From Takakia lepidozioides (Eukaryota > Plantae > Bryophyta), in the NCBI GenBank assembly GCA_030704615.1, contig CM060732.1, forward strand, positions 26,536,001 to 26,600,000: a stretch of 64,000 nucleotides of DNA, in the 5' to 3' direction. The notes below the pieces were generated by a model. It was not told where the DNA came from. It ran no database searches and saw only the letters and a list, made by a program, of their open reading frames with translations. Shown here piece by piece: positions 8,385-63,400 of the stretch. The translations under genes and the position numbers were made by a program. Positions within the stretch are counted from its first letter, which is position 1. Each line of letters starts with the position of its first letter.

Positions 8385-9002
8385 CTTGCTCCACTACTCC
8401 TTCCTTCGTGATGTTTGTCTTATCTCTATTCTCTTATCCTAATACAGTATGTAAATAGTGCAATCCCAAACCATCTCGTATGTGACTATTGGAATACAAA
8501 ATAGACGTTTGAACTCATGACAAGGTTCATGAATTCTACTTCAAATTCTGCAACTAAAAATCTTACAAGATGATGTTTGTCGTTGGCGCCCACATTAATA
8601 GTAAATATATTTGGCGGTAAAAAATTAGGCAGAAAATATTTACCTCGATCTATGAACTATATATATACACATACGTATACCTTCCAATTTCTAATTATAG
8701 GAAAGACGACAAGTCGTGGGTTTTGTAACACTTCTTGATATTGTTCCTCTCCAAATCTCTGTACTATCATATCTCTAATTTCTGCCTTACGACAACATAT
8801 AATTTTAAACTTACACTCTGAAGGAAAATCACGGAAAGGAAGTTGATTTAAGTCCATAAAATTTTATACTATCGTTATGACGCACCATCATTACTATCTA
8901 TTCAACACTTAAAAATATTAACAACAAAAATTTCTTTAAAAAAAACATCTTAATCGAATCCTCCTAAAAAGGGTATTCACTCCCAACTTTAAGAAAGACT
9001 AG

Positions 9003-9014
9003 GCTCTGATACCA
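9003..9014 (-). promoter_or_regulatory. Primer-binding site complementary to tRNA-iMet
   Basis: Minus strand TGGTATCAGAGC directly after the 5' LTR. Confidence 0.92.
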
Positions 9015-9015
9015 T

Positions 9016-9377
9016 TGTAACACCCAGGATCTACACAAACTAGAATAGAAGTACTTCTCAACTTTTTCCCAAAATAACTCGATGTCTTCTAGGTTTTCAT
9101 TGCATATTTATATACCCTTTACAATTTGATTATTTTAAAGGTTTGACTTTAGAGCCTCAAGTCAAAACTTCATAAAGTCAACCTTTATAGGTTTGACATA
9201 TTCTCCACAATATGACTTTATCAAACATTTGACCTACTCTCCATAATATAAATATCTTATAGGTTTGACTTGAGAGCCTAAAGTCAAACTTCCTTAAGGA
9301 ACCTTCCTAGTTATTTTGGAAACTTCTAGGGAACTTTCCTCCTCCATCTAGAACCTTCTAGATTCTACCATGTTACA
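9016..9377 (-). repeat. 5' LTR of chromovirus
   Basis: Direct repeat of 3497-3864, with roughly 18 substitutions and a few indels counted by eye. Confidence 0.95.
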
Positions 9378-10224
9378 CACCTCCTCTTTAATCCAGAAAT
9401 TGTTAATTATGGTTTAAATGAAGATTAGGTTGGTATCAGGAGATCAGTTATGCAAGGGGCATTTGTACAAAATCCTGGAGCAGTGCACTTCTCTTTTAGG
9501 AGCCTTAGGAGGCGCTTGTTTTCTTACCATCACAATGTCGTTGTCTAATTGGGTTTAGTGTAATATTGGAGTAACTTCTTTCTGGCTGTTTGCTGCTGCA
9601 GAGAGACAACTGCTACTATGAAAGAGGGGGGACCCTCCACACATTTTCCTACACTCATTGTTATGTTATGTGTATGTGTCAATACACTCACTTGTCTTTG
9701 TGTCAGTGCTTACATGCTTAGGTTTGCTTTGAAGAGGCTGTACTAGTGGTGTATAACTGCTAGAGAGTTGCTTGGATTAGTTGGTTACGAGTCGCTTGGA
9801 TAGATGTCTCCCTTTCGTTTTGTTTATAGTCTTGGCCTTTGGGGCTGGTACAAACAACTGGTTAGTTGTCTCAATGTTTCTATGTTTTGCTCATTACTTT
9901 GTGTGTAGGTTAAATGTTGGCTTGTCATTTTCATTTTGGTACAAGGTGCCTACTGTCGGTGTAATAGTTGCATTGCTACTATAAGAGCTGATTGTTGGTT
10001 TTGGGCTTACTTGGGCTGTAGCAGCAATACTGTTTGTGGTTGTAGGGAGTGCTGATACAGCAGCTTTGTATTGTGGTAAGAATTGACTGCAGGTTTTGGC
10101 AAATGTCAGGCTGAGTCAACACGCGCTTTTGTGCCTATAGGGAGTGCTGCAGCTGTCGCGGACATAGCCGAGAAGAACTCACCAAAAAAATTACCAAAAG
10201 TTACCAAGTTACTGGGAATACCAA

Positions 10225-12218
10225 TTTAAAACAGGGATGGTAAGGAAATTATCCATACTTACAATGTGTCTCTTACCTCAAAAGCCAGAAAAAGAAGACT
10301 AACTAGAGAGTAACCCTGCCAATGGGTCAAGTCCACCGTGTCGTCCTTCCCCAAATACACTTCCATCTGAACATACCTTAACTTGACATTGGCCAAACAC
10401 CATATCTTAATCTCCACCATTTCAAAGGTTTCTTGGCCATATATTGCTGGATTTTGTTGTATTTCCCTTTATACTTCACCATCATTTCATCCACGCTCAA
10501 ATCTTGTTCAGGTGGGTAGAATTTGGCATACAACAATACCTAACAATCTATCAACCAACGTGTCTTAGCCAGTTTGTCAAAGCCAGGTTGTCCACTCACG
10601 TCCACCACAACAGTGTCATTGTCAACAAGGTAGAGGCATCGCAAGATTGCTTTCCACCTGTTGCGGCTCATGATACGCACTGTAGAAGGACACTTGAAGA
10701 GTTTGAACTCTCATTTCTAGTACAGCCTTCTATTAGTTGGGAGTTTTTTCCAAATCCATTAGGATATGGACCGTCAACCATGCCCTCAATTCCTTCACCA
10801 CCAAAAGGTACCAGCTACTCCCACTCTTCCCATGGAATTCAAAGTCAGGGCATAGATGTTTGTCATCCTACAAATTTTGCGCATGACAAGCATCGGCCAA
10901 AACACATTGAAGAAGTCCATAGGCTTATTCTCCTCCAGTCCACACTACCGCAGACACTTCATGCAGCTCTGCCAAATTTCACATGTCGTCTTTGAACAAG
11001 TCATGTGTTGGACAACTATCCCAGTCTTTAGGAAGGGAGTACAAGCCCAATTCGCGAGTGGGCAAGCCAGTGTCAACACAAAATTCATACAGGTCGTGAT
11101 CATCGGTAGCATGAGGGTTGGTTCTAGCTTCCTGATCATGTGGATCAAAGTCGGTATCCGAGGCATTGGAGTCAGAGTGTTCATCACAATCAGAGTCTGA
11201 ATTGTCATCCAAAGTATCTACCCCTAACATATCTTCCACAGAGCACGGAAATTCGCCTTGTATGGCTAAGACATGATTGCACACCTTAGAGCTTACAGAT
11301 TCTACGGTACCATCCCTGAAAAAGGATATGAGGTAGCATTGATCACTTTCCAGCAGAATGTCCCAAGTTCGTTCAATGATTGTGCCATATTTCCACACAC
11401 GGGCGTTGGAGGAGGAGGCTGGTGAAGGATTTGACAAATCACAAATATTCACCCTCACAGTCTGTCCCAGAACCCCCAAATCTTGCATGTTTTGGCTATG
11501 ACCAGCCACATCGCAATCCTGCACTTGAGAATTTCACAGGCAATACAATGCAGACATAAATGAAGCATAGTTAGTACCAAAATCTAGAGGTGGTGGATCA
11601 GCATCATTACCTTGGCTCCTTGCTAGAGCTTTCAAGCTCATTGAGGCTAGTAGCAGAAGATACACAGAACTCAAGCCAAATGGGATCCCTCAACACATCA
11701 TTCACTGCAACCGAAAACCAGTAGGGTATATTCCTTCTTCTTTTCGCTCCACCCAGCCGAGCAGTTCTGCTGCTTGGCGACGCCACAAATAGCAAAAGTT
11801 GCTCGGCTGGCCAAACAACTCAAGCATGACGTTTTAGTGAGAGCAGGTACTCCTCATACAATGCCCCTATGAGTTGAACAACTTGCTCCTCTGAAGCACC
11901 CAAATTTTTCGCCCACTTGGTGATGACATCCAGCAACGGCTCCATGCTCCCTCCTGCTTGGCGTGAACGAGGCGTGAGCGAGACAGAAAACACGAGAAGG
12001 AAAAGAGAAAGGTGGGAGCAAGTGGCTGCCCGACCCGCTGCCACAAAAACCCTAAATTCTCTGCCCTAAAAAATCCCTAGGCCAATCATTTTGCATGCGC
12101 ATGCCTAACGCGTGGGGCCTTCTCACCAAAAATTTCCAAAATCGGTTCACAACTGACAGAGTTACAGCCTGTAGAAAATCTGAAACGGCCCGTTTCGGGC
12201 CTCGCGGACATTTAGGGG
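10225..12218 (-). mobile_element. piggyBac-superfamily transposon, copy 1 (5' end intact, 3' truncated, transposase pseudogenised)
   Basis: Minus-strand translation of 10740-10230 gives IMSRNRWKAILRCLYLVDND...FDKLAKTRWLID...FYPPEQDLSVDEMMVKYKGK...QQYMAKKPLKW(fs)IKIWCLA...MEVYLGK...GKRHIVSMDNFLT. These are the conserved piggyBac blocks, including the first two catalytic Asp. Terminus on the minus strand: TTAA (12219-12222) followed by CCCCTAAATGTCCGCGAGGCCCGAAACGGGCC. Confidence 0.9.
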
Positions 12219-12918
12219 TTAATAGCCGTATAATAAAGGATATCATTAGAGATATCCACAATTATATGAATAAAGCGATGGTTTTCTTAAGTCAATAAGT
12301 GGTTCTTAACAAATTTAATTATACTAACTAGTACAAGGTTTTCGATCATAAAACCATAAGGGAAAAAAGTCACCTCATGGCCTCGAAACAGAAACGTATA
12401 ATTATAGTATATTATTGTATTAATATTTTTTAAGGATTGTTACTATTGTCCTGCAGTTATGCTAATAAGTGCAAAAACAGCTGTCAACTAATTTTAGACC
12501 AGGACCCACCATCATGCCCACCATCATGGCATTTAATAACCATCAAAATGAATCCTGGTTAGGGCCAGGTTCCATGGAATCACCTTCCAAAACATGAGGG
12601 GGTGGTTCCATGGAGACCCTTCCTTAAAATGTCCCACCCTTCTAACTGTCCCTCTATGAGGATGCCAGGCCCGGTAAGGGAAAAAACAAAAATTATAATG
12701 AGAAGACGCAAGGGATGTTTGCGTCTGAGTCGTAGAAGGGCGATTAAGTTGCCGTGACGCCCTTCACAAATATTCCATTTTTCAAATAAGGGGATTATTA
12801 ATTTGGGGCGACATGGAATCAGATCCTTATTTCATGAATGGAAAGCAAAGCAAAGGGTAGAAAATCATGTTTTCCATTACAAAACTCGGTGCACTACACA
12901 TTAGGGGCTAAGGACAAA

Positions 12919-13077
12919 CAAGTTGTAGCCCAATGGTAATGGGCACATGCCACCTGGGTCGTGGTTGTGTGGGTTCAACCCACCCATGTGCCTCCTGTTG
13001 GAAGGCAGTAGTCCTCCCGGGTCAAGAGACACCATAATTTTTGCTTCCTTTGGGAGGTGCCATATATTATTATTATA
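12919..13077 (+). mobile_element. tRNA-derived SINE, copy A
   Basis: A-box TAGCCCAATGG, B-box GGTTCAACCC, shared body ...GAGACACCATAATTT..., (ATT)n tail. Homologous to the copies at 13562 and 16887. Confidence 0.8.
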
Positions 13078-13376
13078 AGGGCCTAAGACTTTCTTGGGGG
13101 GAGGGGGCCTAAGGCCAAGATTTTACAAGGCCAAGTTGGGTCAGCCCCTCCCTTGGCCTCTGAACTTGAAAATACTTTAATGTTTAGGCCTCTAAGCGTG
13201 AATTTATTTACGCTAACTTCGGTTTACCTCACATATATAAAACCAATGTTGTGCGGGTAACTAGATTTTTGCTTATCCTTTGATCCACTATTTATTTTAT
13301 GGTAAGGATAAATAATAATTTGTTGATCTATTTATCCTCCCATTAAAGTCCAGTATATTCATCAGGGGTAAGGGTA

Positions 13377-14103
13377 CAGTCTCCCCTGGATAAATGTTAC
13401 CTCTATAAACGTTAAACTACCATAAATGTTAAGAAAATTTTACTCCCCTACTTGTGTACACTAGCAAATGTTAAGTGTTATTTGTTAACAATTGTTTACT
13501 CCCCTCTTTGTTAATTTGCCCTATGTAAATGTTGAGTGCACCATAGAGGTGTCCATGTAACCAAGTTGTAGCCCAGTGGTGGGCACATACCACCTCGGAA
13601 GTGGTTGTGGGTTCAATGCACCCTTGGTGTCACAAAAGGTGTCCACCTTTCTAGCGGAAGGGAGGTAACCCTTCGGCCTTCCGGGTGAAGAGACACCATA
13701 ATTTACGCTTAATAATATTCATATGACTGCCACTGAAATTCCAGCGCCTGTAGCATTCAAGGATGCCAAAATGGCCATAGCTACAATTTCTCAATATTTG
13801 GAACAAATGCCTTATGACGTTATGAAAACTATTTTAGCATGAAATGCCTAGAGAAAGAACTCGATGATAGGCATATTAGAGATACTCGGCAGACCACAAT
13901 CAATTCATATTTCCTACCCATAACTGAATAATTACACTTTGTTTCATAAGTGTTAATTTCATAAATCTTATATTTGTCAAATGTTACCTTCTGTAAATGT
14001 TAATGTGTTACAATTAACCCCTTCATAACTGTTGATGTGTTAACCTTGTCTAAATGTTATTTTTTCCTACTCCCGACTGTTAATATTTATCCAGGGCAGA
14101 CTG
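13377..14103 (+). mobile_element. pogo/Tigger-like (Tc1-mariner superfamily) internally deleted element
   Basis: TA TSD on both sides; TIRs CAGTCTCCCCTGGATAAATGTTA / TAATATTTATCCAGGGCAGACTG. Retains a transposase C-terminal remnant PVAFKDAKMAIATISQYLE...RQTTINSYF. SINE copy B is inserted inside. Confidence 0.8.
13562..13718 (+). mobile_element. tRNA-derived SINE, copy B (nested in the pogo-like element)
   Basis: CAAGTTGTAGCCCAGTGG...GGTTCAATGC...GAGACACCATAATTT. Confidence 0.8.
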
Positions 14104-29500: not shown

Positions 29501-32500
29501 CAACTCTGGGCCCCAAATATCAATGTGGTCTCCTTCGCTTCAAAGAGTGAAGACGCAAGAGATATCATTCGAAGATATGAATTCAACCTCCAGAGTGGGC
29601 CTTTCAAACCACAGATGGTTTTGACAACGTTTGAAGTCATCAATTCTGTAAGAGAGGTTATCCCTCCTGCATGCCAGTAAGGTTGTACTTCAGGTTTTAT
29701 GTTTGTGAAAGCAGCTGTGCTTATATTGCACCCATAAAGAGATCATAAACTTTCTACTGATATTGACACAGGACTCGGATTGCCTGAAGAAGCTCGATTG
29801 GGAGGCTTTGATAGTGGATGATGGGCGACGTCTACGCACAACAAAAACATATCGTCCCTTAAGCCAGATTAAGTCTGCATTCCGCCTGCTACTCTTGGGC
29901 GAACCTATGAAGGTATTGGAGCTCTGCTAGGGTCCTTTTGAGCGTCAATGGACAGGTGTACCGCATTGACCTTGTTAATGGCGTGGTTTATCATCTATGT
30001 CCCTCTTTTCAAGCGTTCTGTGGGGCCAGGATACTTCCTCTCCTTCTCCACCCAAATTGGGCGCGCTGGATATTGTCAGTTTAGGTCATTTATGCATCTC
30101 CTTCCTTCCTACCTACCCTCCTCTCCCTCTTTCACAAAGTCTAATGAGTGTATGACTGTCTTTCTCTTCTTTTATGGCTTTCATCAGCTCTAGTGTTGTG
30201 ACCAGTGTTATCTGTCCGCAGCGTACCCTGGAGGAGCTATCGCAGTTCTATGCATTTATTGAGCCACAACTGTACAGACAGGAGGAAGGAATTCAGATGG
30301 CTGAACTGCAGGATAGATTGGTTGGGCGTGTACATGAGTATATTCCAAGGATCTGCATGACAGAATACTGGGTCCCTGTGGAAATGCCCTCAGTGCATGT
30401 CCGCCAGTACTGTGACATTCTTGTACATAACTATGGCACACTTTCTCGCAACCGCCGTGAACAGTGTATATCACAGATTCAAACAGTGGTTGGGAAACTT
30501 CGCCAGGTAACTCATGTAAACATTGTTGCTTAGCAAAGAGTTAGGTGGTCAGTCATAATGCCAGACTTTCAAAGACTACTTTGTGTAGAGTCCACATTTC
30601 GAAGCCTATCTTGTTTTTATTAGGTCAATGTTTTCTCTACAAAGCTATGTTCTTGGAGAGAATGTATTCTTCACAGATGGGAAGGCTTACATGGGTTCTG
30701 TCATCTGTGGGGGTCAGTCCTGCAATCATCCATTTTTGGCAGATCCTACACTCGAGGGGCCCATGGGGAAGGATCTCACCACCCCAAGGGAGGTACTGGA
30801 GGCACACATTCAAATCAGTGGGAAAATGCAACTGCTGCATCTGATACTCCCCCTCCTTCAGGTGGCAGGGCAGCGTGTCCTCATCCTCTCCCAGGTATAC
30901 TATCAACTTCTTGAGGTCTGCTTTGCATGAGCCAATACAGTATTAAGGTACAAAACAGATCCTAGGGGATTTCCTTCAGCTTGGAAACTATTTAGTGAGG
31001 GCTGATGACTGAGGGGTTTTCTCTCTCATTGCTCGTTCTTGAGTCTCTGAATTTATAAAAGAGGTGATTCTGTCATCTACCCATCTGTCATATATCCCCT
31101 GCATGTTGCAGACTTGTCACTCTCACATCCTTAGGTGATAGCGCGCTGCCACTTCCGCTGACACACTGTTTTCCCCCTTTTCATATATCAAAGAGGAATC
31201 TTTGCTTCAAACTGCTCTTTATCACTTGACAGAGGTTTCCCGCTCAAACTGGGCGCGGGGTCAATGGCCACAAGGCTACGGCGAACAACGTCTTATGAGT
31301 ACAATCTCTTGGAAGCAGAGTTGAACAGAGTTGTCCATGAAAAGAATTCTTGGACAGCTTCAGAAGGAAAAAGTTCTACAAAACCTGCCAAACCTTGCAA
31401 TAAATGGAATGTTCCCCTTTGTCATAGGTACTTTGTTGGAAAAAATACTGACACTAATGGGGTATTTGATGCTTCTCTGGTTGATCAGGAAATAAACCAA
31501 CTCAACACCCTCCATAAGTACATGAATCAGTTGTTTGGGGGCGATTCATTTGAACAAGTGTATTCGGACCTTGCTGTCAACGCAAAGCAACGTGCGAGTG
31601 AGCATTTCAATTCTAAAGACTCCAAGCAGTTTGTGTTCTTACTCAAAACCGGTGTTCATGTTTCCTTGACAAATGTTGATCTAGTGATCATCTATGACAG
31701 TGACTGGAACCCGTCCAACGACACCCGGGCATTGAATAAAGTGCACATTGAAGGTGAAAGAAAACACCTTACTGTATTCCGGCTCTATACACACTTGAGT
31801 GTTGAAGAGAGCATGCTGATTTTGGCCCGTGAAAAGCAGATGCCTTCAGTTATATCAGGGGCAACTGTTAGTGGGAAGCTGTGCCAGAAACTCCTCATGT
31901 GGGGTGTTCATAGGCTGTTTGAATTGAATGATGAGTTGAATGGGAGCAACTGGAGTCCTAGGGAACACAAACAAACTTTGTGGAAGGCAGTACATGGCAA
32001 CGCATTGTCAGCGTCAACATCCAAAAGAAGGATGCCAAATATTATTTATAGTGTGGAGAGAGTCCGAAAACTTCTGGAGGGGGCCTTTGCCCAGGAGTGT
32101 TGTTCCAACCGAAACGGGGATGAACTCTTGGAGGCAGTTTTGGTCCCAAGAGAGTTAGAAGGAAATAAAAGCACTAGAGGGGTGCCCTTGTTTGGGGAAT
32201 GTGATGTGGACATGGTTGATGTGGATGCTGGGGAATCGCCGGAGGTCTTTTGGTCGGTTTTTCTGAAGGAGAGGCATGCAGAGTGGCAAGCAAAGGAGGT
32301 ATGTATGTGTGGATTCTATTGCAGTTCTGTAATGACGCTGTTTCCTGTTTTCCTTGGGGCAAAGCAGTGCTGCTAGGACTGCAGCAGAAGATGCAACTCA
32401 ATGTGGAGAACCCTGTAAACTGTGTGGCTATAGTGATATCCCAGGAAGACAATGGAATGTTGCATTACTTCATGATTTTGTCCGCTTAAGATGTCAACTC

Positions 32501-40016: not shown

Positions 40017-40200
40017 TTAACCCCTACACCCCCTGGGGGGGGGGGGGTTTACCTTCGGGGAAAAAATGGACCCTGCTATGTAAATGGGTGTAATTCCCTA
40101 CTGTTTTACAATTAAGAAAATGTGACCGGACAATCTGTGCCCACTTCCCACCTTTCTCTGCACTTGCATGCGAAATTGTCGGCCAATGGTACCTCATCTG
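40017..40200 (+). repeat. Dispersed repeat with a TTAA-CCCC terminus, related to 3193-3340
   Basis: Shared blocks GAAAAAA(A/T)TG(G)ACCC and TGACCGGACAA(A/T)CTGT...CTGCAC(C/T)TGCATGC(C/G)AAATT at both loci. The copy here starts TTAACCCCTA. Confidence 0.5.
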
Positions 40201-52300: not shown

Positions 52301-52548
52301 GTCATCCAACGATTTGTCATCGTGGCGAATCGATTTCTGATTTCTGACGCAATCCGAAACGGGTCGTCGTCCATTAGGGGTTAACCAAGCGGCTAGTCAC
52401 GTAATGGCTCCTCCGAAGAAAAATTGTCATCCAACGATTTGTCATCGTGGCGAATCGATTTATGATTTCTGGCGCAATCCGAAACGGGTCGCGTCGTCCA
52501 TTAGGGGTTAACCAAGAGGCTAGTCACGTAATGGCTCCTCCGTAGAAA
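52301..52548. repeat. Tandem duplication of a ~122-bp unit containing a piggyBac-type terminus (...GTCCATTAGGGG-TTAA) plus its flank
   Basis: Units 52301-52421 and 52426-52548 are nearly identical; TTAA at 52381 and 52508. Confidence 0.85.
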
Positions 52549-54177
52549 TGAATTTTTCTTTTGTATTAACTTAATATTAAAAATACGTAGATATAACATT
52601 AAACCCTAGTAAACGCCTGCAAGGCCCAAAACGGGCCGATGGTTGGGCTTAATTGGTGTCATGGCGCAGAGCTGAGCCTAGTCTTTGACCCTGGAAACAC
52701 AACGTCGTTGGGATCTGCATGCAAGACCAATTGATTACATTCGATCTGAGGGCCGAGATCTTGGGTGTTTTGAGGCTGGGAGGTTGGCTGGGCCGGCTCT
52801 CGCCTCTTTCACTGGCTTCTCTCTCATACACTACCTCGCGCACGTTGCTTGTAGGTTCCCATTTGCATGTTGATTGTGTTGCAGGTTATCATTACAAGTT
52901 TCATTCTCCTGCAGGTTGCCGTGTGGTTGGCTTGCTCTCGCCGTCATTGTTGTCGTGCTGAATCCCATGCGCTTCACGTCTTGTTCTTTGGTTCCACTTG
53001 TTTGCTTACTGGTGTGTTGTCTAGCTTTGTTGCGCATTGCGCCCGCTTGTCTGCTTGGATTCAATAGAGGCGGCGGGGAGTGTCAACTTGTTGTTATAGC
53101 TACCTTCAACACTCCACTGCTCTTCCACACCTAGCTAAGCAAACAGCTACAATTGCTGAATGGGCAAGGGGCCTAGGGGCGAATGAGGAGCAAGTGGCTC
53201 AACTTGTTGGGGCCCTGAACGAGGACTACTTAGTGCAAATGAAATGCCCTGCAATGATCACTTGGCCGGCATTTTCATGTGCCAGCCAATTTCTGCTACC
53301 GAGTAGGTTGAGTGGAAGTAGGAGGGCCATCCTAGTGGGTTCTCTTCCGACATCAATGACCTGCTGAGGAAGTCAGTGTGGCCTGATTTTGTTGTATCCT
53401 CTACAAATAGCCACGTCGATGAGGCTTGGGGCTTTGGCAAGGTCACTGGGTAAGTCCAATTCCTACGCTGCAAGTCAATTTCAAGACCAACCCCCTGTCA
53501 CCTACTCGTTGAGAAGCTCTCAAGTTGAGCACCGTGATGTGGCTGGTCATAGCCAACGCCTGGAGGAATTGGGGGTGGTGGGATTTGCAATTGCCTGATG
53601 CAACCTCTTCCTCCACCCCCCATGTTTGGGTTTACGGCACTGTAATTAAGTGCACATGGGACATCGTGACAGAAATAGAGCTCTGGCTTGTATGTTTTGT
53701 GGGCGTTCACTCAGTATCCTCCCACTTGTGTTAGTTGATAGACCTAGATGTCGATCGCATTATCTTGTTCAGTGGAACAGATATTAGGGGTGGATGCTTG
53801 TGCTATGAATTCGAACAGTGAGGGGTCAGACTGTAATGACTCGAATTCAGATTTTGATCCGGAGGAGGAGGTGAGAGCTAACCTTGCTTCTGTTGTAGAG
53901 CCTAATTTATGGGAATTCTACGTAGACACTAGGGTGTCTAGCCATGAACTTGGTCGGTACTCCCTGCCCAAAATTGGTTGGAGTGGGAGGCAGTAGACAT
54001 GTTTAGGGATGACATGTGGAATAGTAGTGAGCAAACTCTGCCAGAGGTGAGGTGGATTGGGGGGGGGGGGAGCACCTAGAGGAAGAACTCCATTAGGTAA
54101 TGATGCACTGCATGTGGATTTCTGTCCTATACCGTGTAGTGAACTCGAACGGTAAGCGAAAGGTATATTCAAAAGCT

Positions 54178-57100
54178 CACTACTATATTTAGGGGGGGTT
54201 AGCGACATGTCATGCGCATACATATCGCTACACAACTACATCGCTGTCCAAAACCACACAACACATGTGCACACCACACACTAGTATACCACTAGTCCAC
54301 CACTAGTCTAACCACTAGGCTGCCACTAGTCAGTCGTTAGGCTGCCCACTATGGCAGTCACTGGTCCACCACAATCGCCCCTCTAGCTGGTGCTTAGGTC
54401 CCTCGAAGTCTAGGTAGCCACAAGATGTGATAGTGACCGTAGCCTCACTAAGTCCTCCACCACTGTCCCTACTACACTCAAACTCGATAGATCAAGAGGC
54501 CAGGTGCAAGAATTGCCCATAACAACTGTCTTAGAGCCTATTCCAGCCCCCTACACCTGCCACTTCAAGAGCCATGCTCTATCTAGGCTTGAGGTTGAAA
54601 CCCCACCTCGCATATACCCTACAAGTGCTTTTCTTTCACCCAAGTGGGAACCAGCCCTAGCCCTTCCATTCTAGCTCTCTAAAGCTTAGGCATGCTCCAC
54701 ACATGCCCCACTCTCACCACAAGAGAATCAGCCCCTTTGCTTCCTTTCTTGCACCCACCAACCTAAAAATATAAGCTTCAGCGGGCTGGAAGCATGCTCC
54801 ACACATGCCCTACAGGGAAACCAACCCCTTCATTTCTTTCTTGCACTCCCAAACCTAAAAGTACAAGCCTTCAACGAGCTAAAAGCATGCTCCACATATG
54901 TGTTACCCTCACATAAGAGAAGTCAGCCCTTCCCTCTTCCTTGCTTGCCCTCCAAGCTTAAAGATGGAAGCTTTAATGGGCTGCATGCATGCTCCACACA
55001 TGCATCCTCTTCACACAAGAGGTAATATCAGCCCCTTATCTTGGCTCTTTGGCTCCTTGATGCTCTCTAAGACAAGACTAAGCACTCCACAGCCCTTACC
55101 AAGCTCCTGAAACCCTAAGGCTTACATTTCCAGCCACAAGACACTTCTCTTGTGGTGCAAGAGCTCTTCTTCCAAGCTCTGAAACCCTAGGTGCAGATTT
55201 CATGGCCTTGCCGCACCTCTTAGCTCCTGTTCCACCCCTGCTTTTGCCATGACAAGAGCCCTCACAATGCTGAAGCTCGAGATTGAAACCCAATCTCAAC
55301 ATACTCCACAAAGTGCACTGATTTGCCCAAAGCCAAATCAGCCCTTTCGCTTGGTCACAATCCTTCACACAATGAAAACTCGCATTCCCAAGTCTAGTTC
55401 TCAGCTTTGCCACCAAAGCCACTATAACCTGCTCTTGACTGGTCCTCTTCCCAATCGTGCTTGCTCATGCATGTACACAATCTGAAACCATCAAGGTGCT
55501 CTGGAATTACCTGCAGCATGGTGCTTTCATCTCTGAAGCTGAAGATCGAATGTCAAGGTCTACCACCTCGTAACCCACATCGCCTCCGCTTCTAATAACC
55601 AAGAGCTCCACAGTGCTCCTTGCATAACAACCTGGTTTCTCTCATTCTCAAGCAAAAACCACAAGTGCTACAACTAACTCGTATCTGGCACTCACAGATA
55701 CGAGCTCATCTTTCTCGAGTGATAAAGATGAAGAATACAAGCACAAGCTCATGCGAGCTCACAAAGCTGAAGCATAAACTCATGCATATATAACCTCATC
55801 ACTCAAATACAAGTCAAGCCAAGTGCACCCCACGCCATGGGGAATCCACACTACGGCGCCATAGCTAGGCGCGGTGAGGCTCAACTCGAGAAAGATGATC
55901 CTCCCGCACTTGCCGTGAAGATAACCACTCCAGGGCCTAAATCTGCCTTGACCCCTGGATTGACACTTGGGCCAATCCCAAATGTCAATATGTAAAGCTA
56001 GCTATTTCCTAGCTAGTTTCACATAGTGGTGAAATAACTTGACAGACGCCCAACCCCCCACGCCCGATTCTCCGTGCGACGCCATCGCCGTGACGGTTTC
56101 TGCGACGCCCTGAGCGTCGCAGAAAATTCTTGCGAGGCGTCATAAGGTGGCCGAGGGACTGCCAAATTGGCCAAGTCCCTACCTGCGACGCCCGGGGTTC
56201 AGACTGCGACGCCTTAGCGACGCCCAGGGCGTCGGCGCTTCAAGCACCCCGGGAAAAAAATAATATATATATATTTTTGCGACGCTTTGGGGGTTGTTGT
56301 TTGGGAGCGATGCCTTGGGCGTCACATTTGATATTTGTTTTTAGCCAAGTCCCTACCTGCGACGCCGGGGTTCAGGGCGTCGCTTCATGCCAAAAAATAA
56401 AAATAAAATAAAAAATTAATGCGACGTCCTGGGCGTTGCTTTTGCTTGAGTTTTTTTTTTTTTTGATAAGTCATTTTTGGGTTTCTGCAGTAAAAGGTTC
56501 AGGAAAAGCGACGCCAGAGACGTTGCTTACATTTGAGCGACGCGAGGAGTGTCTCTTCGAGGTCCCGACGAGCAACCGATGTATGCATGAACTACCTTAT
56601 GTGCAATTAAATCATGAGTTTGTGTGTAAGTTTTGTAAACTGATATGTTGGTTAGAGTGAAGTGTCTTACTATGTGTATAATGTAGAGGTCTTGAGTTCA
56701 AATTTGCCTAACAACATGTTGAATGATTTATGAACTCGATATGTGTTGGCTACTTGCAAACACATGCTCATGGGTTAGCTTCACTACGTGACAAGTATGT
56801 GTCCTACCATTTTTTGAACCGTGTGAATCCCGCCATTTTTTTAAATTCAAAATTCAAAAAAACCTCAATAAGCGATCCCCAGGGTGTCGCTCCAATACAG
56901 TGAATCCCAGGGCGTCGCTTTAAAAAAACGACGTTATTTTATTTTTATTTTTATTTTTTGCCTTCTTATATGGCAATAGCAATGCCCCGGGCGTCGCAGT
57001 CATTGTGACACTTGGGGCGTCACTAATGGGGATTTTCAGGGGGGGTGGATCTACGACCCTCCCCAGCGTCGCCTTAAGTCTGGAATTTGTGGCGTTCCCA

Positions 57101-57230
57101 TAGCGACGCCGAGAGGCGTTGCAGATTTGTGATTTTCGCCGGCCTGAAAATACGCGATTAGCGGCGCCTGGGGTGTCACTGGGGCATCGCTACCCCCCCC
57201 CCCCCCCCCCCCCCTCCAAATGGAGTAGTG
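54178..57230. mobile_element. Non-autonomous CACTA/En-Spm element
   Basis: Termini CACTACTATATTT(G)n TAGCGA / TCGCTA(C)n...AAATGGAGTAGTG; many GCGACGCCC/GGGCGTCGC subterminal repeats (56045-57190); flanks GCT/GAT (imperfect 3-bp TSD). Confidence 0.8.
54208..56044. mobile_element. Probable solo LTR (~1.84 kb) inserted in the CACTA left end
   Basis: TGTCA...TGACA ends with flanks GACA/GACG. Removing it restores TAGCGACGCCC, matching the opposite CACTA end. Non-coding, with about 4 internal ~85-100 bp repeats (GCATGCTCCACACATG...) at 54690-55040. Confidence 0.55.
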
Positions 57231-59806
57231 GATAGAAATGTACTAGGTATGAGAAGATGAAGGGGTGGATTTGACTCATGGTATGGGCTAATCAGTAGTG
57301 ACGTGGCTCCTTTCTGACTCTGAAGATAAAGGGCACATCGTCTCTATGGACGATTTTTTCTCTAGCCCTGTTCTCTTCTACGACTTGGCTAGAAAGGGGA
57401 TCTATGTCACTAGCACAGCCAAAACCATTCGTGTGGGTTTTTCGAGTTGATTGGATTTGGGCCAAAAAAAAAAATGGGAAGGTTGCAATGATGCATGCAT
57501 GTTTCAGGGAAGATTGTGGCATTGGCATGGTCTGACAAAAAATGTGTGAACCTACCAAGAATATTCAAGACCAATTGCGTGGGTTAGTGTACAAACCTGC
57601 GACCACAAGCGGTGGCACAAGCTGTACTTACATTCTGTTGACATGAGCTTGGTGAATGACTACATCCTCTACCAGCATTGCGGCAAGGGGTCGTACCCCT
57701 CGATCACATTTGCTTTTCAACTTGGAAGTGGTTAATGGTTTGATTGGTGGGTGGGTTGGTCCCAGGAGAATAGTGATATCAGGGGCGTCTGTAGCAAAAT
57801 CTCGAATCAATTTTTCTGATCAATGATCATGTATCGTGATGGGAAGTTGTGGTATTGTTGCTTCCACAATTTGCATGTTTATCAAACCAACGAGTTGTTT
57901 GCTTGGGATTTACTGAACACCAAGGTTGAATTTTCTTTCACATAATTTGCTAGGTTTTGTCTTTTTATTTATGATCCCAAACACAAGATTTTAAAGCTTG
58001 GAAGAGGCACATTGCCTGAGGGGATCATTATGCAGCAGTGTGCTTGACTTCTTTGGCGCCGAAGTTGTGATCTGTGATTATGAATGTCAGCCGCAGTACC
58101 TTCTAAACATGTTACTAGGTTGTTGGTAGTTGTGTGAGCATTGAGGACAACTGCAAGGTCACATGTGTGACTTTGCTTATGCCTCGGTGACCTAGGGGTG
58201 CTTGCAAGCATCGAGATCATTGGGATTGGAAGCTCTGACATACAGTTTTTAGTCTATGGAACACTTATCATATGTTTTGGGTATGTTTCACTGGCAGCTC
58301 TACCAGTCGGCATACGCCAACAACTTCGTGCAAGCTTTTGGCAGCCTGAATTGTAAAACCAGCACACCTCCTCATCTAGCATCTCCTTCTCCCATGTAGT
58401 TTCAGTTGACGAGCTCGAGAGCTCGTCAGTCTGCCACAGCCGCTCGCAGCGGAAGTAAAGAGGAGAGACAGCAAAACATTTCGGGCAGCTCTCTGAAATT
58501 TGGTTTTGTACAATGGTTTGTTAACTGTGGCGCTGCGGTTTGTTAGTGGCCAAGTGCAACCAGACCCTAGTATTGTCGGACCTGCTAGCTAGCAGGCCAG
58601 ATAGTAGTGGCTAATGGCCAGCCAACTAACAGCTAGATGCGCCAGAGGCATTACTTGTTAAGATTTTGATTTATAAAATCCTTTATAGAACCTATCCTTG
58701 AAAGAAGCAGTAGCCACAAAATGAAGTTGTTATTAGTTATGTCAGCTCTAGGCAGAAGTCTTTTATCTCTATAACAAAAATAGTATCATTAATTGATTGA
58801 ATGTCTTTTTATTTTAAAAATTAATTAATTGATTTGTAAAGTTACTTGAACATTGTTGTCAAAAGTCCGGAGCAATGTGTAGTCCTAGTGATTTTTGCAA
58901 GTAATTCTGGTAGTTCCAGTAGGTGGTTCAGTTGGATGGTGCACTTAGTGCCACTCATATGAGTCTCGTTTCAAATTATGTTATTTGTTGAGTCTGAAGC
59001 AATCATTTTCCTCTTCTTTTGGGGTGGTGTCCCTTGAGCCTCGCACTGATCTCACTCCCTCCGAAATTCACACAATTTATTTTTTGTCTTTGTTTTTCAA
59101 GGAAAGGGGACAGTGGCCCTTTTAATCAAATTAGTGAAAAAAAAGTCACAGAAGGTGGAAAAAATAACCACCCATGGGCCGTGCAGGCTTACTGTAGGGG
59201 AACTTCCCCGTGACCTTAGCAAACTAGCCAAAATAATCTGGAGATGGTATTAGCAAAGAGTAGGGGTAGGATCTAGGGAGTAGGCCTAGCAAAGAGAACC
59301 TAGATTGAGAACTAAGAGCAAGTACTTAACATCATCTAGAGAGAGATCATAGGTTTCAAAATTTCAACTGGGCTCTGAACTTGGGATCCCGAGCTTTTTT
59401 GCGACACCAATTGAACTCTCCCTCCTCCTCTTAATCACCAAGGGACTTCCCATTGAGGGGGGATGAAGTCTTGCCAGTGAAAATGCAAGTAAGGAAGACG
59501 GGTGCCGAGCATGTTGCTTTTGCCCCAAGACTACTCGAAATTTTGGAACAGAATTGGGCCCAAGCTACTTTGAAACAGTGTTTTTATTTCTGACTAGAGT
59601 AAGAAATGAAGAAAGTCAAAGAGGGAAGTTGGCTAACATTTAACATAACAATAAGTTATAGATACTGAGCGCACCTCTTGCAAAAGTTACGAATACTGAG
59701 GCATGCAAGCAATCAATGCAGCTGCGTTGTGTGAGGAGGAAGACAATCATGGCAATCAATGCAGTTGCGTTGTATGAGGAGAAACATGTCCTATGCTGTA
59801 ACCGCT

Positions 59807-60466: not shown

Positions 60467-63400
60467 GAGCAGCCTTCCATGTACCCAGCTCACCGTCTAA
60501 GGGAGGAAACCGACAAAACTTGGCCGGGTAGCATGGGGTAGCGGGGCGGCGGAAGAGTTCCTATGTGATAGTGCAGCCCCATAAAATGGAAAGAGAGCTC
60601 GCACAAATTTATTGCAGCATGTACTTGCCTGCCACGTCGTGCTAAACTCAGTCGTACGTAGTACCTCTACCACGACATGCTAAAGTCCAATTATTACTCG
60701 GCCGCCGAGCTCACATGAACCCAGCTATTGTTTTTTAGCACCCGGCAAATTCCTTTTTCTGCGGGCCGAGCTCCTCCCGTGGTCTGATCAGCAGCTGACC
60801 GCTTTGGAGATTTGAACTCTGGAGGTATACAAGAGCATCGTGGAATGAGCATCGATGCATCGAAGCCGTTCGTGCGGAAAGTTGTGGGCCTTGTGTAGCG
60901 GAGATGACCTTCGTTAGGGTTTGTTGGGGCGGCTGACCTTTGTACATAGCCAGGAGCCATTGCCGAAGTTTCTCTCGGGTAGGATTGCGGAGGCGGCTGA
61001 TTGAGCTCAGAGTGACCCGCTGCAGATGTACAAGTAGATCGTCTGTTTGTCTCTAGGTATGTGTGGTGTTTGCCTTGCGATGTGACGTTGGTCCTAGGAA
61101 GACAGGTGCGGTGTCAGGGAAACATCAGGGTTATCATCTTTATTCCAGTAGTCACGTTGATTCGTGGTCATCCTCTCTCAAAATTCTCGTTGGGTTTGAC
61201 TGTTCTTATAAGCTGTGATTTTTCCAGCCAAGCTCTCTACTTTTGTTTTCCTTACGCACTTGATGAGTTGAGATGTTGTATTCTGTTGTGAGTGATTCTT
61301 CTCGCGCGGTGTTATTGTGTGTTTTCTGAATATTAATCCTACGGCGGCATTGTCGAGTTCACCCCACTGAAGCACTTTCCGTGTTACAGATATGGTGTCC
61401 TCTCCTTCCCTGCATGCCTAAATGGAAGCTAGTCCATTTCCCCGGTCTGCCAATTCTTGAGCGGTTTTCATGGGAACGCTGGGATTCGACACCCCAGTGA
61501 GAGATTAACATTTGTTTTGTTGTCTGAATCTCCTAGTTGTCGGTCGCCTTTGAGGATGTCGGGTCTTTGTACACAGAGGTGCGAGTGATGTCAAGTAAAG
61601 CCAAGTAGTCCTGTGTTGTAGTTTGGCCGGTTTTTTGTTGTGGTCTTTAGTCCTGTTGAGGCACAATGATGATTCATCCACTTTTTGGTTGAGAGATTAC
61701 TCGTTGATGCAACCAAAACCTCCTACTCATTCTGAGTGCTGCAGGGCTTTATGTTGGTCAGTATTACCAAGGCATGTGATGAAAGAAATTGTCAAAGGGT
61801 AATTTGCGCCTGATCGCTGTGATGTTACACCTTGGAGACCTGATGCCTTGGGTTTGTCCTTCATGTATTGAAGTAACATGTCTACTAACAGTGCGAAATG
61901 AGGACGTGGGCTCGGCTGGATCCTTTTCTATCTGACCCACTTCGAACTGTGGTTTCCTGAAATTGATTACCCCAGAGGTGGTCCACCGGAAAATTCAGCC
62001 AGCTGATCCCTATTTCGCCACAATCTCTTAAAAGTACTGCCGCATTCTAGGTCACACAACAGACGCGACACGCTTTGAAGCTCCCTCCGAACTTTGGCAC
62101 AGGACTGTTTGTCGCATCTAGAAACAAGGGTTGAATATTCTAAACCGCTTGTGAATGCTGGCTTAGCATGCCAACACTTGACCTGCAGTTTTTGGGAAAT
62201 GGACTGGCTTGTCCATTTCTTCAAGGCGCAGAACTGCGGGAGGGAGTTTAGCAGGCCAATACTTGACCTGCAGTTCTGCCTGGGCAGCCATAATTTCCTC
62301 GTCCCCTTAGCATGAGTGGATGTTGTGAAACTCATCAAGCCCTCAACCCAACTGCTGAATACATCCTTTCACCAGGGTTTGAAGGGCGGCCATCAACCCT
62401 ACTCTGAGGGATAATTAAACAATAAATCTCCACAAACATAGTCTGTGCTGGCTTCCATTCATGGATATGTTCGGATTTGAAAATGTTTGGCCTGCTCACA
62501 CACTTTGGGTGCCTATGTAATCCTCGTTTTCAAAATTCAGCTGAAACGTCATGAGCTACAAACAAATTTTAGCAGTCTTACAAAGTTTCATAATCTTAGC
62601 AGCAATTGTTTCTCATTGAGGGCGAAGAAAATGCTGCTCTTGAAGGTGCATGGAGAGGGAGTGGATGGTAGAAGTTTGCAGCATTTGCCAATTTGGGGTT
62701 CCTATTAAGTTATGGCGTTGGCCTTCCCGTAGTTGTTGTCCTAGTCTTTGTGCATCACTTTGGTGGGAGGGTAATGTTTATTAGATGCATGTTCATGTCA
62801 ATCTCACAATGTGCATGTACAATAGCCTACTGATTAGACAGCATGGTGAAGTGGCTCATGCCCACACAGATTTTTTGTATGTATTTGTATGTGTACGTGT
62901 AAAAATTGTGTATGTAAATAGTAACAACATAGGAAAAGGATAGGTTGGACAACAGAAATTTTATTCGGGCTCACTTTTTTGTCGATTATCCTCCCGAAAT
63001 TATCCAGGGAGAGAATGTAGAGCCACGAGAAGGTGGACGAGTGCAAGCAATTTGGGAAACAACAGGACATGATACAGTGACCAATGTCCCGTGGCTTTCC
63101 CGACTTCAAAGAGACCAAATCAACTGCCCAGTGACCCAGAATATACCACAATAAATATTGGCCGCCTCCTTGTAGCCATAGAGTACTGGAAAACTCCCAA
63201 GTGCTTTATACGAAAGGCGGCCTAACATAGAGAAGGAACAGAAAAGCAGTGAAATATCTTACAACTATAACAACACAAGCACTAACAGCAAATTCAGGCC
63301 CATGAGGACGCTCAGACAGCCAATAGTGGTTTCTTCAGCCTGGCTATGCCAGATCAGAAACTCTAGTCCAAAACACTTTGGTATCATCACAGCATAAAAG

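Follow-up and report, generated by a model that had tools for sequence, protein, structure and literature searches.

A decayed and rearranged piggyBac-superfamily remnant as the probable content of a single-copy locus in a bryophyte-like land plant genome

In 2017, piggyBac was stated to be undocumented in plants (PMC5381638), and a survey from 2015 had listed PiggyBac among the superfamilies present in all the groups studied, land plants included (PMC4438587). More recently, a mining study from 2025 (Ivancic et al.) recovered a "Group 4" of PiggyBac elements from land-plant genome assemblies, which was flagged as unexpected and given without description. Literature searches on bryophytes, mosses, hornworts, Physcomitrella and Marchantia, and Selaginella yielded no detailed account of piggyBac, but only RepeatMasker tables and uses as a vector. 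The novelty that an earlier note on this DNA had seen in a plant piggyBac is therefore not supported, since land-plant piggyBac already figures in the 2015 survey (PMC4438587) and in the 2025 mining study.

Here, we describe a locus within a 64-kb window, the whole stretch of DNA that was analysed. Positions 9375-12222 hold, with a probability of about 0.88, what is left of a dead DNA transposon of the piggyBac superfamily, present as a single copy in the nuclear DNA of a land plant that resembles a bryophyte. The element had at first been delimited as 10225-12222; this interval is instead the 5' portion of a dead, rearranged copy, and 10225 is a break inside the transposase. We refer to the locus as copy 1, to a diverged relative in the same window as copy 2, and to a 1.9-kb public contig with the same layout as L001. 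The features of copy 1, from its 5' end onwards, are as follows.

12219-12222, minus strand: TTAA target site adjoining the 5' end (read directly)
12180-12218, minus strand: 5' terminal region, which opens with CCCCTAAA and holds a subterminal palindrome of 15 bases (12187-12201; sequence read; pattern search)
11607-11945, minus strand: upstream reading frame of about 112 codons, with a TGA at 11822-11820 (frame map; identity to copy 2)
10979-11641, minus strand: N-terminal extension of the transposase, ATG at 11641-11639, TGA at 11536-11534 (frame map; identity to copy 2 and to the L001 protein P0003)
10979-11524, minus strand: 181-codon open frame within the N-terminal extension (open reading frame read)
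about 11225-11482, minus strand: predicted beta-rich module within the N-terminal extension (AlphaFold model)
10226-10944, minus strand: initial two thirds of the catalytic domain of piggyBac, divided over five frame pieces, with a TAG at 10542-10540 (Pfam, tblastx, frame map)
10209-10228, minus strand: truncation or rearrangement point (homology to the relatives ceases a few codons past the second aspartate)
10158-10167, plus strand: 10-base exact inverted match to the 5' subterminal sequence of copy 1 (sequence read)
9375-9474, plus strand: C-terminal transposase fragment, opposite in orientation to copy 1 (tblastx and blastn to copy 2)

The identity of the locus comes from its catalytic domain. 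Copy 1 was searched as uninterrupted frame pieces, one at a time, and two of these matched Pfam DDE_Tnp_1_7, the RNase H-like catalytic domain of piggyBac, namely 10540-10680 (16.7 bits, E 0.0046, profile positions 75-112) and 10378-10536 (21.9 bits, E 0.00012, profile positions 119-154), both on the minus strand and both slightly below the gathering score of 22.4 bits that serves as the cut-off. The two pieces are adjacent and colinear, they lie in the same frame with a single stop, the TAG, between them, and they cover consecutive positions of the profile. The relatives score higher: 32.7 bits for the copy 2 piece at 57292-57447 (E 6.2e-8, above the cut-off) and 59.5 bits for the domain piece of L001 (E 4.6e-16). 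L001 also matches the solved piggyBac transposase of T. ni (PDB 6x67) over residues 205-296, which span the first catalytic aspartate, and in tblastx it is colinear with the window over 10456-10944 and 11315-11422 (summed E 4.7e-23). In the ESM Atlas, the DDE_Tnp_1_7 domain was present in all 30 of the 30 nearest named clusters. A word-indexed search with the 126-residue domain piece of L001 returned no relatives within its length limits. A PDB search with a 52-residue piece of copy 1 gave a MYB match as its sole result, which we put down to chance.

Because the Pfam pieces are colinear, the L001 domain scores as it does, the tblastx alignment is colinear and L001 links the family to the solved transposase, the piggyBac identity of copy 1 is, as judged by homology, secure. 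These scores bear out the DDE_Tnp_1_7 homology that the earlier note had made its check, and the six canonical piggyBac peptide blocks that it had read are all present on the minus strand, in the order it gave, over three frames. Its DDD triad stands in part. The codon of the first catalytic aspartate lies at 10491-10489 (minus strand), as placed through the alignment of L001 to T. ni piggyBac 205-296, and that of the second at 10253-10251 (minus strand); the region of the third is missing from copy 1. The C-terminal cysteine-rich domain also falls in a region absent from copy 1, and Pfam recognised no such domain in the pieces of copy 2.

The two relatives tell us where the element begins. 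In copy 1, the element sequence opens with CCCCTAAA right after the TTAA at 12222-12219; in L001, a TTAA is followed by CCCCTAAA at about base 89; and in copy 2, a TTAA is followed by a CCC-containing end at 52599. All three copies are unrelated before the TTAA and alignable after it. Because similarity to copy 2 and L001 also begins exactly after the TTAA and the sequences upstream are unrelated, the TTAA/CCCC junction at 12222-12218 is, by this comparison, the real 5' end of the element, and the reading of an element that begins CCCC after a TTAA is upheld. The 22-base end sequence of copy 1 is unique in the 64-kb window. The pattern of the 15-base palindrome occurs twice in the 64 kb, against a chance expectation of 0.09, and both occurrences are at the ends of the window copies, 18-21 bases inside the element end and at about equal distance from the TTAA in copies 1 and 2. 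Searches of the window for a 3' end of either copy found no second TTAA and no 3' terminal repeat. The 5' CCCC/CCC end is present; the window has no inverted end to match it, only the internal 10-base inverted match at 10158-10167. All three related copies have a TTAA next to their 5' end; the 3' side is absent, so that a target-site duplication is not visible for copy 1.

Further TTAA + CCCCTA junctions were seen in the window. Two of them, at 52373-52384 and 52500-52511, stand 127 bases apart in a tandem duplication that lies a short way upstream of copy 2. Another, at 40017-40028, faces the opposite way. From their sequence, they may be the ends of other TTAA-targeting elements.

Copy 2 supplies the second view of the family and is organised as follows.

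52599-54064, plus strand: 5' part of copy 2, decayed, with TTAA, CCC end, palindrome at 52623-52637, upstream frame and N-terminal extension (sequence comparison)
57250-57823, plus strand: 3' part of the catalytic domain of copy 2, with the second aspartate present (Pfam, translations)

Copy 2 spans 52599-57823 on the plus strand, with an insert of about 3.1 kb, unrelated in sequence and rich in palindromes, between its two parts. A G-run (about 54058-54070) stands at one border of this insert and a C-run (about 57195-57216) at the other, and nine copies of a GC-rich palindrome of about 19 bases are spread over 56100-57180 within it. Copy 2 is dead as well, with stops, frame changes and the first half of the catalytic domain missing. 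Its third-aspartate block has presumably also been deleted, as judged against the T. ni sequence. Copies 1 and 2 share about 50% amino-acid identity and mere patches of nucleotide identity, which agrees with the claim that the host carries a diversified piggyBac family.

Upstream of the catalytic domain, the family shows an arrangement of two overlapping reading frames. In copy 1, the last 35 bases of the upstream frame (11607-11641, minus strand) also belong to the start of the transposase frame, and in all three copies the end of the upstream frame falls within the start of the transposase. In L001, the upstream frame occupies 533-766 and overlaps the frame at 760-1263, and its upstream region matches copy 2. 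The ATG and the stop codon interlock there in 7 bases (760-766). In intact copies, interlocked frames of this kind could, to go by the sequence, allow translational coupling or else a programmed frameshift. Pfam gave no match to the P2X7 tail domain for pieces of the upstream frame at E values up to 1. The upstream frame of copy 1 is 48-57% identical in amino acids to that of copy 2, and its N-terminal extension is 31-55% identical to that of copy 2 and to the L001 protein P0003. Because amino acids are conserved in the sense frames with little nucleotide identity, this pattern indicates that selection once acted on both the upstream frame and the N-terminal extension.

The nature of the N-terminal extension was approached through structure prediction and searches. 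AlphaFold gave five strands for the residues encoded by 11225-11482, with a pLDDT of 60, and the whole 181-residue N-terminal frame was modelled with a pLDDT of 44. Foldseek with the model of the beta-rich core returned no significant match (best E 0.4, TM about 0.4); Tudor and Sm barrels topped its list, none of them significant at that best E of 0.4. A Tudor- or Sm-like barrel for this module is thus only a lead, suggested by the predicted model. Sequence searches with the extension recognised no domain, and the ESM Atlas gave low scores only. An exhaustive protein search with the 181-residue frame produced four weak matches, in which P0003, on contig L001, is the one true relative; two of the four are bacterial repeat proteins and were discarded as spurious.

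Copy 1 itself has decayed beyond function. Its transposase frame is broken by the TGA at 11536-11534, the TAG at 10542-10540 and five further frame changes, and the element as a whole carries three in-frame stops and six frame changes in the frame map, if the shift from the upstream frame to the transposase is counted. As it reads today, copy 1 cannot encode a transposase. Nor can it be mobilised in trans, because only one end remains.

The proposed history of the locus follows from these features. The intact ancestor, as family membership suggests, would have moved by cut-and-paste into TTAA sites with a DDD transposase. Its family is distinguished by a 5' end of the form CCC(C)TA that bears a subterminal palindrome, by a short overlapping upstream frame and by a transposase N-terminus lengthened by about 200 residues. 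Copy 1 would have retained its 5' end, gathered its stops and frame changes, and lost all sequence past the second catalytic aspartate. The C-terminal fragment beside the break would have come to lie in inverted orientation either through an internal inversion accompanied by a deletion or by way of a second copy placed tail-to-tail, two routes that we consider about equally likely.

The evidence at the break bears on both routes. The tblastx alignment of copy 1 to copy 2 ends at 10227, and tblastx and blastn against copy 2 found no downstream transposase sequence in sense orientation past this point. The fragment at 9375-9474 (plus strand) is homologous to copy 2 at 57704-57801, with a tblastx alignment over 57704-57798 (summed E 2e-5) and 73% identity over 67 bases in blastn. 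The 10-base match at 10158-10167 stands between this inverted fragment and the break; it is weak evidence, with an estimated chance expectation of 0.03-0.05, and is possibly a remnant of the 3' end. That the sequence beside the break comes from another piggyBac copy, one that faces the opposite way, has nearly an even chance and is compatible with our main explanation. In its favour, only about 100 bases are recognisable, adjoining a high-copy repeat at 9345. Against this, the inverted match between fragment and break is to the 5' motif of copy 1 itself, where copy 2 and L001 differ, and the order of fragment and motif suits a single inversion. An inversion within copy 1, for its part, is suggested by the fragment of 100 bases and the weak 10-base match, and we regard it as about equally likely. 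Under either route, position 10225 marks a breakpoint and not the end of the element.

Sequencing reads place this remnant at single-copy level. The depth across 9468-12807 is about 28-43, versus thousands in the flanking repeats, and one contig spans 9345-12615 without mismatch; the runs behind both the depth and this contig may be the source of the assembly, so the support that they give to the junctions is not independent. Because read depth is at single-copy level, copy 1 has no close paralogue in the genome, which fits an old insertion. On either side of it are very high-copy repeats, at 12808-13800 and 8800-9467, whose summed contig depth reaches about 39,000, where single-copy sequence has 28. 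Repeat units at about 12913-13100 and about 13559-13710 recur about every 640 bases and resemble tRNAs in appearance; ARAGORN called no tRNA in the flanks of copy 1.

Two further studies that carry the same species label have contigs which cover 10438-11971 and 10672-11853 only. They are colinear with the genome, with a few single-base changes, and do not span the junctions; the runs in question (X5 and X6) are small assemblies, RNA by guess. If these runs are RNA, the transcript of copy 1 is unspliced and starts near 11970, and its own 5' region may drive transcription of copy 1 at a low level. This apparent expression invites the reading of an intact gene, a functional piggyBac transposase or a domesticated derivative, whose introns mimic frameshifts. 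The stretch is single-copy, a 181-codon open frame persists, and two of the three copies have stops in the non-conserved middle of the upstream frame, where a small intron could lie. However, the TAG sits between two conserved, Pfam-matched blocks of one frame with no space for an intron, the contigs of the other studies pass through the frame changes without a joint, and the catalytic domain lacks its last third, with the C-terminal fragment inverted. A domesticated PGBD-like gene would show an intact frame with its ends lost; copy 1 shows three stops and six frame changes and keeps its 5' transposon end. An intact spliced gene is therefore very improbable.

The host was judged from other features of the window.

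61767-61851, plus strand: snoZ101 C/D-box snoRNA (Rfam, above the gathering score)
63304-63399, minus strand: snoZ157/R69/R10 C/D-box snoRNA (Rfam, above the gathering score)
31264-32376, plus strand: helicase C-terminal exon, part of a very large host gene at 20-39 kb of the window (best relatives 44-49% identical)

Both snoRNA families were originally described from plants. The helicase exon has no relative above 49% identity, and the second-best cluster holds a 3,592-residue protein of Sphagnum magellanicum, the nearest named relative, at 49% identity. By these likenesses, the host belongs to the land plants and is most likely a bryophyte distant from Sphagnum. A contrast with flowering plants, such as had been drawn for this piggyBac, is thus inapplicable, the host being bryophyte-like. 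The least probable alternative, a contaminant or misassembly that joins DNA of an animal, fungus or protist to plant sequence, could appeal to the far greater commonness of piggyBac in animals and to the lone junction-spanning contig from runs that may be the assembly source, but three studies with one species label contain the stretch, its depth is no different from that of the single-copy flanks, and the same window holds a diverged second copy, plant snoRNAs and a moss-like host gene. That the piggyBac lies in plant nuclear DNA and not in a contaminant, as had been argued from the neighbouring genes, agrees with the snoRNAs, the moss-like gene and the three studies of the species.

A dead piggyBac remnant in a bryophyte-like genome leads to a broader reading, which we offer tentatively and with rather less than even confidence: that the two window copies and L001 belong to an old piggyBac lineage, kept up in bryophytes, with an undescribed architecture, made up of an overlapping upstream frame, an N-terminal beta-barrel, possibly Tudor-like, and a subterminal palindrome. 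If this lineage reading is true, the N-terminal module could steer integration toward particular chromatin, and the relic at copy 1 would be evidence of the age of the lineage in this genome. A bryophyte genome with diverged piggyBac copies could inform how the superfamily entered the green lineage or persisted in it, and a bryophyte piggyBac could supply plant-adapted transposases as tools. The copy 1 locus itself is a decayed example; it marks the age of the family and is one of the three copies that define the 5' architecture.

Among described systems, the "Group 4" PiggyBac of Ivancic et al. resembles copy 1 in being piggyBac in land-plant assemblies. The likeness to T. ni piggyBac and piggyBat lies in the homology of the catalytic domain with its first two aspartates, in the TTAA at the end and in a terminus that starts with CC. 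Unlike these two elements, copy 1 has no third aspartate and lacks both the cysteine-rich domain and a 3' end. Also in contrast to T. ni piggyBac and piggyBat, the family of copy 1 has a transposase frame about 200 residues longer at the N-terminus, as well as a conserved overlapping upstream frame and a subterminal 15-base palindrome.
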